NCBI GenBank assembly: GCA_965644265.1
Contig: OZ286472.1
Location: forward strand, 56,296,001-56,360,000
DNA from: Glycera tridactyla
Lineage: Eukaryota
Direction of reading: 5' to 3'
Length of the DNA stretch: 64,000 nucleotides
Part shown: positions 10,066 through 11,742 of the stretch, piece by piece
Numbering within the stretch: the stretch's first letter is position 1
Layout of the letters: the number at the start of each line of letters is the position of its first letter
The notes under the pieces: generated by a model
What the model was told of the DNA's origin: nothing
Database searches by the model: none
What the model saw: only the letters and a program-made list of their open reading frames with translations
Made by a program: the position numbers and the translations under genes

Positions 10066-11129
10066 ATTGTATGAACGTAATCGGTTTCATCATGGCAGCA
10101 ATTTGTTCAAAGTTAGTTACTGCTTCTCTCGAACAGCAATCATGTTGATATCCGTTATTTGATTGAGATAGATAGTAGATAGATATGGAAATATTGGCAG
10201 AGAACGACATGAGTAAATTAGTACAGATAGTTATAGACGTGAGAGTAGGTATGAGAGGTAGAAACGACATGTTTGGGTATGAGCAATCATTAACCATCAA
10301 CCATCTTGATAAGTCTTTGTGTCGATGTCCATTGTTTGATACAAGAATCGTCAAGTAGCTATTGTAGAGAGTTATACAATAGTGGGTAATACACGAGATA
10401 TGGTAAAACAAGTACAACATTGGTGAAAAAGAGGTACTAGGAGAACATAGTACCTGAGTTCGTATAACATCCAGTTCCAAAGTAATTAAAGAAATTATAT
10501 AGTCACTCACAAGGATGCCAACGACTTATAGATTATCATAAAGTTGCCAAACAAACAATAACACATCAAGAATTGAATCTTGTTGCCTCACTTACCACAG
10601 ATATCAGGGTTTATAATAACTAGCAAACGAATTACCAAGAGTTTCTAGGTCATTTGTGCAACAACCAACAGTTGGCAATGCCAATATACCGATATCATCT
10701 TAAAAGTGAATGTGGGATCACTGACCCCAGGGGGGGGGGGGGGGGGGGGCTGAGTTCTGATCACAAATAAGGACCCGTAATAAAACAGTAGGAAATGAGA
10801 ATAATAATACGATAAAAGGAGACATGAGAGCACTTTCCAGAGAATGCTAATTTCTAGTAGAAGAAATAAAATTGAAATAAAGTTGGAATAGACCTACGTA
10901 CCGCAAGATTGGCTTGAGATTGGACGTTATGATACAGGATCCAGCGAGAGTCTTATGCGAGTGTTTACGAACAGCATAACCCGCGTGTACACAAAGAAAT
11001 GTTCCCGGAGTTACATTTACAATTTAAATTCCACAAAATGATGTAGAAGTAGTGTCATACAGGTCTCCACGTTCAGGGATAATCATAATTGCGTGTGTGA
11101 TAAAGTAGAAATCCAGTCAAAGACGACCA

Positions 11130-11225
11130 TACTGCTTCCGGTCTATCCGGGTATCGAACGCGAGAGTCGGGAGCAACACGCTTTCTGATTGGTCAACGCG
11201 GTCACGTGCAGGTCGTGGCCAATCA
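11130..11225 (-). promoter_or_regulatory. Putative internal Pol II promoter module in the LINE inter-ORF spacer
   Basis: CpG-rich patch with ATTGG 11188-11192, CACGTG 11203-11208, CCAAT 11219-11223 and an ETS-like ACCGGAAG on minus (11135-11142). Motif inspection only. Confidence 0.4.
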
Positions 11226-11742
11226 CAACCGCAGACGGCCTCTTCGGCAGGAGACCATTGTTTTTAACTTCCAAATCATTAAATAGTTCCGCCGAAAAGA
11301 AGGCCCAACTTTAGATTACAAAATACTATTCAGAGGCGCCTTATGTACGATTAGTATTCACAAATTAACTATCAGGTGTGATTTTAACGAGTTCGGATCC
11401 CGTTAGCTGAGATTCCCGCGAAGATTCAAGTCACGAAACTATACGGGTGTCGCAGTTGGCCGGGGGGGGGGGGGGGATCAGGTACATCTGCAGGGCTTCA
11501 TAATAGGTTTCAAACAGTCAAATTTTGCATATACTCCCAGCGAGTTGGTATTGTTTCCAACTATTAATCAGAGGCATAGATTCTCAATAGTGATTAGACA
11601 CAAATGATTCATCAGTGTCTACCATGATATTATTTCTAGTCAGTTATTTGCAACAAGTATGCAAGTTGTGGGTTGAGATTCACACAAATATGTGCAGTCT
11701 AACAGTTACACAAAAGTGTGGTTAAGCAAGGCATGTAGAAAA

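Follow-up and report, generated by a model that had tools for sequence, protein, structure and literature searches.

On the minus strand of a 64,000-nt stretch of the Glycera tridactyla genome (assembly GCA_965644265.1, contig OZ286472.1, positions 56,296,001 to 56,360,000; hereafter the window) lies a single copy of a long interspersed nuclear element (LINE), ~7.1 kb in length, whose two open reading frames (ORFs), termed ORF1 and ORF2, are separated by a spacer of 1677 nt. This spacer is conserved across a LINE family. It has a constant architecture with two conserved blocks, A and B, and a short frame within it, ORFx, has a stop codon that overlaps the start of ORF2. We propose that the spacer is a conserved functional part of this CR1/L2-like LINE family, in which Block A may serve as regulatory DNA and ORFx may bring ribosomes to ORF2. 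To this explanatory chain as a whole we assign a probability of about 0.4. Coordinates are positions within the window, and the spacer and ORFs were searched for across the 2.04 Gb genome in 207 contigs.

Read along the LINE strand (minus, as for all element features below unless stated otherwise), the copy begins with a 5' untranslated region (UTR) of ~196 nt (13774-13579), which abuts a run of N (13775-13913) at its 5' end; its start, CTACGCCAACCGAC, and the conserved UTR are common to seven full-length copies. ORF1 (13578-11743) is open over 611 codons, with codon 14 as its first in-frame ATG, and is followed by the spacer (11742-10066) and by ORF2 (10065-7168), which encodes 965 amino acids with an apurinic/apyrimidinic endonuclease (APE; Exo_endo_phos, E 3.5e-11) and a reverse transcriptase (RT; RVT_1, E 8.2e-37). 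The 3' UTR (7167-6684) carries AATAAAG at 6731-6725 and ends in a (GTCATT)6 tail at 6719-6684; the tails of other copies are (GTCATT)n or (GTCATACT)n. An initial annotation, made from the letters of the window, had described both ORFs as uninterrupted and 1677 bp apart, and it was exact on both points.

Copies of the element have a common 3' end and variable 5' truncation, as for APE-type LINEs, and the element is a LINE of this type. Its tail type, and the fact that some of its relatives carry an esterase, would place it within or close to the CR1/L2 group. We rejected membership of the L1 clade, since ORF2 fits L1 ORF2p no better than it fits R2 (both distant, E ~1e-8) and the tail is not poly(A). 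No identical database record was found for the exact ORF2 protein, and its closest database proteins, all unnamed, are only 35% identical.

A conserved spacer with a module of transcription-factor motifs

The spacer, used as a query, matched ~29 other genomic places at 70-89% identity, in the same three or four colinear pieces. Twenty spacer-matching loci (L001-L020) were studied at the sequence level, and a deeper subfamily (ORF2 76-77% identical, ORF1 51-53% identical; hereafter the 77% subfamily) by coordinates and pattern matches only. At the 14 loci that have both the end of ORF1 and the start of ORF2, the two are colinear and 1295-1793 nt apart, and both ORFs are fully open in five copies, that of the window included. 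According to the coordinates of two protein searches, the inter-ORF distance in the 77% subfamily is mostly 1.4-1.6 kb, with outliers at ~1.8 and 2.9 kb. Among more distant relatives, L021 (from another assembly, ORF2 35% identical) consists of ORF1, a 328-aa ORF (L021:1903-2889) with a weak GDSL-lipase match (E 0.008, below the Pfam cut-off), a gap of 1743 nt, ORF2 and a (TGAATCT)n tail; other relatives have inter-ORF gaps of 267-1120 nt.

Could the spacer be a copy-specific insertion or an artefact of assembly? Two segments of the window copy are indeed missing from most other copies, namely 10513-10632, which is gapped in ~80% of them, and 10093-10302, which lies inside ORFx with the frame kept open and is common to L018 from ~10273. 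However, the remainder is colinear in 14/14 copies with both ORF ends, and the conserved blocks occur solely inside the LINE family. The check by genome search that the initial annotation had proposed thus came out in favour of the spacer as a family trait: it is present in every copy examined that has ORF1 and ORF2, and the genome search found no part of it as a repeat outside the LINE. Because it is colinear in the family and was not found outside the LINE, a copy-specific insertion is already refuted.

The order of features is the same across copies. After the ORF1 stop come a variable stretch, a poly-C tract on the sense strand, ~250 nt of further sequence and then Block A; ~400 nt with little conservation separate Block A from another poly-C tract, after which come Block B, ORFx and the ORF2 ATG. 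The first poly-C tract (11462-11476) is found in 12/14 full spacers, ~250 nt before the CCAAT/E-box module described below, and the second (10730-10749) in most copies, 390-840 nt before ORF2. Both are 7-29 nt long, are always C and never G on the sense strand, and flank Block A in most copies. Their possible roles include sites for poly(rC)-binding proteins, nucleosome exclusion and old template-switch junctions. At one locus (L009:5926-8348), another LINE (ORF2 48% identical) has inserted in inverted orientation behind codon 79 of ORF2, which makes it a nested insertion.

No part of the spacer is better conserved than Block A (11083-11322). Identity per column reaches 65-85% there without gaps, which is the level of the ORF ends, compared with 25-60% and many gaps in the flanking spacer. 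When the window copy is set against most others, ORF2 is 80% identical as protein and 4-fold sites are 32% identical, that is, saturated; in the same comparisons Block A is 74-81% identical and the flanking spacer 48-58%. Even against L018, the most diverged copy, the Block A core is 61-68% identical and gap-free. The block is also rich in CpG, as the initial annotation had noted, with an observed/expected ratio of 1.31; the spacer has 0.85 and the window 0.45.

What is conserved in Block A is a series of motifs. The first, TTTTCGGCGGAA (11287-11298), which we take to be an E2F-like site, is present in 13/14 copies as TTTYGGCGGAA. It is followed by ATTGG-N10-CACGTG-N10-CCAAT (11188-11223), in which two inverted CCAAT boxes surround an E-box; both pentamers are invariant in 14/14 copies, and the E-box is exact in 12/14 and variant in the other two. 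Further on lies the 26-mer ACCCGGATAGACCGGAAGCAGTATGG (11127-11152) with an ETS-type core, CCGGAAG, for which there are 17 genomic places at no more than two mismatches, all of them in the LINE family, compared with 0 for the control. The motifs GGAAGTTAAAAACAATGG, GAGGCCGTCT and GCGTGTTGC are also invariant or nearly so in the 14 copies. The sites reported in the initial annotation were all recovered at their stated positions: on the plus strand, CACGTG at 11203, ATTGG at 11188 and CCAAT at 11219 are all in place, and its ETS-like site, CTTCCGGT at 11135-11142 on the plus strand, is ACCGGAAG on the LINE strand. The two additional CCAAT boxes it listed at 10908 and 10919 are present as ATTGG on the plus strand, but their stretch is poorly conserved (54% column identity).

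The composite TTGG-N10-CACGTG-N10-CCAAT occurs at 83 genomic sites per strand compared with 0 for a reversed control, which exceeds what chance would give. At least three copies of the 77% subfamily hold the Block A core or the composite at the equivalent spacer position and with the same spacing. Near-identical versions of the composite recur on many chromosomes (e.g. G000:C1:22602448, C18:13859432 and C4:111608142), and other repeat families would therefore carry the promoter-like unit as well. At L004:4661-5010, Block A is present twice, 313 nt apart, as a tandem duplication.

Two other readings of Block A were rejected. As a hairpin it fails because the two arms that join ATTGG to CCAAT lack complementarity, and a box-B-like GTTCGATACCC does not mark a tRNA-derived unit, since no Rfam family or tRNA was found in the element. 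The non-complementary arms and the absence of an Rfam or tRNA match mean that the constraint on Block A reads as that of protein-binding DNA and not of RNA structure. Judged by this pattern of conservation, Block A is under purifying selection as DNA motifs, the names NF-Y, USF, ETS, E2F and SOX being attached to them by motif resemblance only. Because lineages with saturated synonymous sites have nevertheless kept the motifs of the module, a cis-regulatory role is well supported, and we consider it highly likely that Block A is a functional cis-regulatory DNA element.

A small reading frame that ends at the start of ORF2

Block B (10333-10512) is conserved in primary sequence. Its core, GGAACTGGATGNTATAYGAACTCAGGTAC (10478-10450), is invariant in the family, and there are 22 genomic places at no more than three mismatches, all in the LINE family, compared with 0 for the control. 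No conserved RNA structure was found in Block B, where RNAalifold gave four invariant pairs, -0.64 kcal/mol and no covariation, nor in the last 140 nt before ORF2, where it gave 0 pairs. These two segments are the conserved ones closest to ORF2, and their lack of conserved structure counts against the internal ribosome entry site (IRES) that had been offered as one route to ORF2 translation. The initial annotation had also stated that the spacer contains neither a 2A motif nor a long ORF. The first half of this statement stands, since NPGP occurs in no sense frame. The second does not: the window copy has a 150-codon open frame at 10058-10510, within which lies ORFx, whose position is conserved across the family.

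In the window, ORFx (10058-10420) is an ATG-initiated frame of 120 codons that begins within Block B and extends 8 nt into ORF2, its stop codon TGA occupying positions +6..+8 of the ORF2 ATG (ATGTCTGA). A corresponding frame of 46-120 codons is found in 17/21 copies. Its start lies inside the Block B core or immediately past it, with an N-terminus of MNSGT.. or MYLFFHMSC.., and its stop lies at +2 (ATGA) or +6 (ATGNCTGA) relative to the ORF2 start. Three of the four copies without ORFx have a broken or truncated ORF2. Owing to indels, lineages end ORFx in different frames, and yet the frame stays open, even across the ~200-nt extra segment; in most copies both frames other than that of ORF2 are closed no more than 8 nt from the ORF2 AUG. 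The length of ORFx gave per-copy P values of 0.001-0.017 against stop-to-stop distances elsewhere in the same spacers, and of <0.0005 to 0.04 against dinucleotide shuffles of the upstream 420 nt.

We rejected ORFx as a conserved protein, as its substitutions are unbiased by codon position and its C-terminal part is read in two frames across lineages. It is the openness of the frame and the place of its termination that look selected, to judge from the aligned copies, and not the peptide. A similar frame precedes ORF2 in four of five distant relatives whose ORF2 is 29-35% identical: 75 codons with the end at +41 in L021, 44 codons with the end at +9 in L022, 143 codons with UGAUG in L023, and 64 codons with UAGUG on the called GTG start in L024/L025. 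The relatives with a short, 267-nt spacer (L026/L027) have no such upstream frame. This recurrent arrangement makes it probable that translation of ORF2 is coupled to ORFx by termination-reinitiation. ORFx and its stop-start overlap, which the initial annotation did not note, give the plainest pointer to the way in which ORF2 is translated.

A possible internal RNA start and mosaic histories

We then considered where an RNA that carries ORFx and ORF2 might begin. Among ten copies that are truncated in the spacer, seven begin within 174 nt of each other, at or just before Block B (scan-statistic P 0.002-0.016 with lenient counting). Three of these seven begin clearly inside Block B, one of which is 98% identical to a full-length copy. 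Six copies without ORF1 keep an intact 965-aa ORF2. ORFx depends on a supply of ribosomes, and on a full-length RNA it would be reached only >1 kb past the ORF1 stop and after numerous AUGs; we count this, and the presence of a selected activator platform upstream, in favour of an internal start. The 5' end of one copy is 34 nt downstream of the ETS-type motif; a discrete 5' end right after Block A was rejected as a candidate, being represented by this single copy only, which chance could explain (~8% by estimate).

The different parts of the element have different histories. ORF1, Block A, and Block B together with ORF2 have different nearest relatives, as seen in the window copy and in L003, L005, L007, L008, L010, L014 and L018. 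ORF1 of the window copy is 94% identical to those of L007 and L014, and its ORF2 and the last 207 nt of its spacer are 95% identical to L018. Between L003 and L008, Block B and ORF2 are 94-99% identical but Block A only 77%; between L007 and L014, ORF1 is 97%, Block B ~90% and Block A ~72% identical. Breakpoints fall in two places, namely at the stop of ORF1 and in the interval from Block A to Block B. Such breakpoints fit template switching at the end of a subgenomic RNA, and they fit equally well a tolerance of breaks in non-coding DNA. Shuffling of ORF1 is known in this superfamily (Jockey; PMC4120745).

ORF1 itself is under purifying selection, with codon positions 1+2 88-92% identical compared with 65-80% at position 3. 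Its shape is helical and coiled-coil-like, followed by a conserved C-terminal domain; no relative was found in Pfam, in PDB or by word search, and an AlphaFold2 (AF2) model of the C-terminal half (mean confidence, pLDDT, 45.7; mostly helical) was too poor for a structure search. At the start of ORF1 is a YY1-like AACATGGCGGCGG (13562-13550), whose motif AAGATGGCGGCGG is kept in all full-length copies. The ATG of AAGATGGCGGCGG is out of the ORF1 frame, and the first in-frame ATG (ACCATGG) follows 20 nt further on. A third ORF1 group (44-46% identical; >15 loci, e.g. C11:17732319 and C17:90469076) has exactly one in-frame TAG in nearly every copy, which could be a conserved read-through stop or could separate two adjoining ORFs, in another LINE family.

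Explanations for the spacer and comparison with known elements

In the explanation that we favour, Block A would be a DNA binding platform for common activators of RNA polymerase II (pol II), acting as an internal promoter or enhancer. An internal RNA would start downstream of it, probably in or just before Block B, with ORFx as its first cistron and ORF2 as its second, and ribosomes that end ORFx would reinitiate at the ORF2 AUG. Since ORF2 translation would follow from ORFx termination, ORF2 would be coupled to ORFx and not to ORF1, and the supply of RT would be uncoupled from ORF1. The analysis shows the conservation, the architecture, ORFx and its overlap with the ORF2 start; that factors bind, that Block A has promoter activity, that an RNA starts internally and that ribosomes reinitiate are predictions from sequence. 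A separate ORFx-ORF2 transcript is possible, at odds somewhat below even. More tentatively still, and on balance doubtfully, the family may have two transcription units, a full-length RNA for ORF1 and an ORFx-ORF2 mRNA from an internal pol II promoter, with the two halves reassorting by template switching at the subgenomic 5' end; such switching would explain the mosaic histories of ORF1, Block A and ORF2.

Several observations weigh against this explanation. The clustering of 5' ends drops to P 0.13 when two uncertain boundaries are left out, and some of these '5' ends' may be rearrangements, because the search for target-site duplications around the copies gave only short repeats of 4-11 nt, which are ambiguous (in the window copy the 5' flank is the N run). 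Two members of the cluster begin 10-25 nt after the second poly-C tract, which could stall RT. Block A lies ~600 nt upstream of the cluster, far for a proximal promoter of the CCAAT/ETS type, and an RNA starting right after Block A would have 16-35 AUGs before ORF2. As to ORFx, the per-copy P values are not independent, the copies being related, and the frame has no third-position bias, with substitutions over all codon positions. Finally, the factor assignments in Block A lean on vertebrate data.

Alternatively, the element may make a full-length bicistronic RNA only. Block A would then boost initiation at the 5' end, either in the role of an internal enhancer or as a downstream piece of the element's own promoter. 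Ribosomes would reach ORFx by internal entry, shunting or serial reinitiation and reinitiate at ORF2 from there. The regulatory DNA of a LINE must lie inside its transcript and the 5' UTR is short (~200 nt); full-length copies have one sharp common 5' end; and Block A is symmetric and motif-dense, as an enhancer would be, and distant from the 5'-end cluster. Long spacers with proposed internal entry are also found in L1 of fish, frog and lizard (PMC5381506), and ORFx coupling would operate on any RNA containing ORFx. However, such an RNA has 16-35 AUGs and >1 kb between ORF1 and ORFx, neither Block B nor the last 140 nt before ORF2 offers a conserved RNA structure, and the clustering of truncated copies at Block B is left unexplained. 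We regard a single RNA as rather unlikely, though it deserves to be taken seriously. The symmetry of Block A might instead point to a mainly antisense or bidirectional promoter, comparable to the antisense one of the human L1 5' UTR, that sends antisense RNA through ORF1 for regulation or small-RNA production, given that the CCAAT/E-box/CCAAT core mirrors itself and that CCAAT promoters are often bidirectional; orientation-independent binding contexts have been described (PMC3730095). Yet the E2F-like site, GAGGCCGTCT and the ETS-type 26-mer keep a fixed order and orientation, the poly-C tracts are confined to one strand, an antisense ORF that is conserved was not seen, and element-level selection for such a promoter over deep divergence is hard to explain, which leaves this reading improbable.

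Splicing, the other route suggested in the initial annotation, would either remove the spacer as an intron or skip ORF1 from the 5' leader to give a spliced ORF2 mRNA. The invariant CTCAG|GTAC of the Block B core does resemble both a 3' and a 5' splice junction. This candidate site, however, has a weak pyrimidine tract and lacks +5G, neither a GT donor close to the ORF1 stop nor an AG acceptor at the ORF2 ATG is conserved, and splicing at Block B would still leave ORFx ahead of ORF2; we consider this quite improbable. The esterase-like ORF of L021, standing between ORF1 and the 1743-nt gap, raises the thought that the spacer is a decayed third gene with its own promoter, relatives having kept an esterase ORF between ORF1 and the spacer. 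But the gap of L021 is not the esterase, because it lies after the esterase ORF, a tblastn search of the L021 and L022 upstream ORFs against the spacers of the family gave no match, and Block A is selected and not decaying, so that a decayed gene seems very improbable indeed.

The element resembles CR1/L2 elements (Jockey superfamily) in its APE and RT-bearing ORF2 of ~960 aa, in its AATAAA and short-unit microsatellite tail instead of poly(A), in its many 5'-truncated copies, and in having many old low-copy lineages side by side with ORF1 shuffled between them (PMC4120745). The GDSL-like ORF of a distant relative likewise recalls the esterase-carrying CR1-like elements. What sets it apart from CR1/L2 is the 1.3-1.8 kb spacer, which contains a transcription-factor module under selection and a small ORF that runs into the start of ORF2, and in the CR1-group papers PMC4120745 and PMC13343379 we found no description of such spacers. 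A close parallel for a long non-coding stretch that lasts between intact ORFs in active lineages, and for the question it poses about ORF2 translation, is the inter-genic region of fish, frog and lizard L1, which measures 257-1032 bp, has no common sequence or structure and, according to Boissinot and Sookdeo (2016, PMC5381506), is predicted to place an IRES beside ORF2. The premise of the initial annotation that most two-ORF LINEs cross a short spacer or overlap was therefore too strong. In contrast to those L1 elements, the family described here is not L1, its spacer is longer and has deeply conserved DNA motifs, and there is no conserved RNA structure adjacent to ORF2.

Stop-start coupling is known from SART1, with UAAUG, and termination/reinitiation has been proposed for human L1 (PMC3894237). 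As in these, the stop of the upstream frame overlaps or abuts the ORF2 AUG (here ATGA or ATGNCTGA), but here the upstream frame is a separate ORF of 46-120 codons, >1 kb after the end of ORF1, and not ORF1 itself. For Block A, human data indicate that NF-Y together with USF or MAX favours 10-12 bp from CCAAT to E-box, an arrangement used by LTR12, and E-boxes between double CCAAT boxes have been reported (PMC4889920, PMC3730095). Block A would be similar in its high-quality, CCAATCAG-type CCAAT and its CACGTG, kept at a constant distance of roughly one helical turn, its double CCAAT and its location in a mobile element, with the caution that the spacing convention of those papers (first C or middle A of CCAAT) is close to, and perhaps not identical with, the counts used here. 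It differs from ERV9/LTR12 in lying between two LINE genes and not in a long terminal repeat (LTR) or 5' UTR, and in a non-mammalian host.

Human L1 has sense and antisense promoters in its 5' UTR and makes ORF2-only RNAs by splicing. The likeness is that of internal pol II regulatory DNA within a LINE; the differences are that the module here lies between the ORFs and that splice signals are not conserved. In the literature that we covered, which is incomplete, neither a selected transcription-factor module between the ORFs of a LINE nor a leader ORF locked to the start of ORF2 has been described.

How LINEs produce RT from a two-gene RNA is a long-standing question, studied almost solely in mammalian L1 and a few insect elements. 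The family described here offers natural replicates for it, with many old intact lineages in which selection marks a transcription-factor platform midway along the element as well as a small leader ORF locked to the ORF2 start. On the conservative reading too, the stop-start device of ORFx, found in relatives whose ORF2 is only 29-35% identical, suggests a testable route across a long spacer. The composite unit occurs ~83 times in the genome and is found partly in other families of repeats, so that mobile elements may be spreading a ready-made promoter unit. If the platform drives an RNA of its own, it would give a LINE a subgenomic mRNA, a strategy otherwise that of viruses and LTR elements, and the dosage of ORF1 and RT could be set separately.

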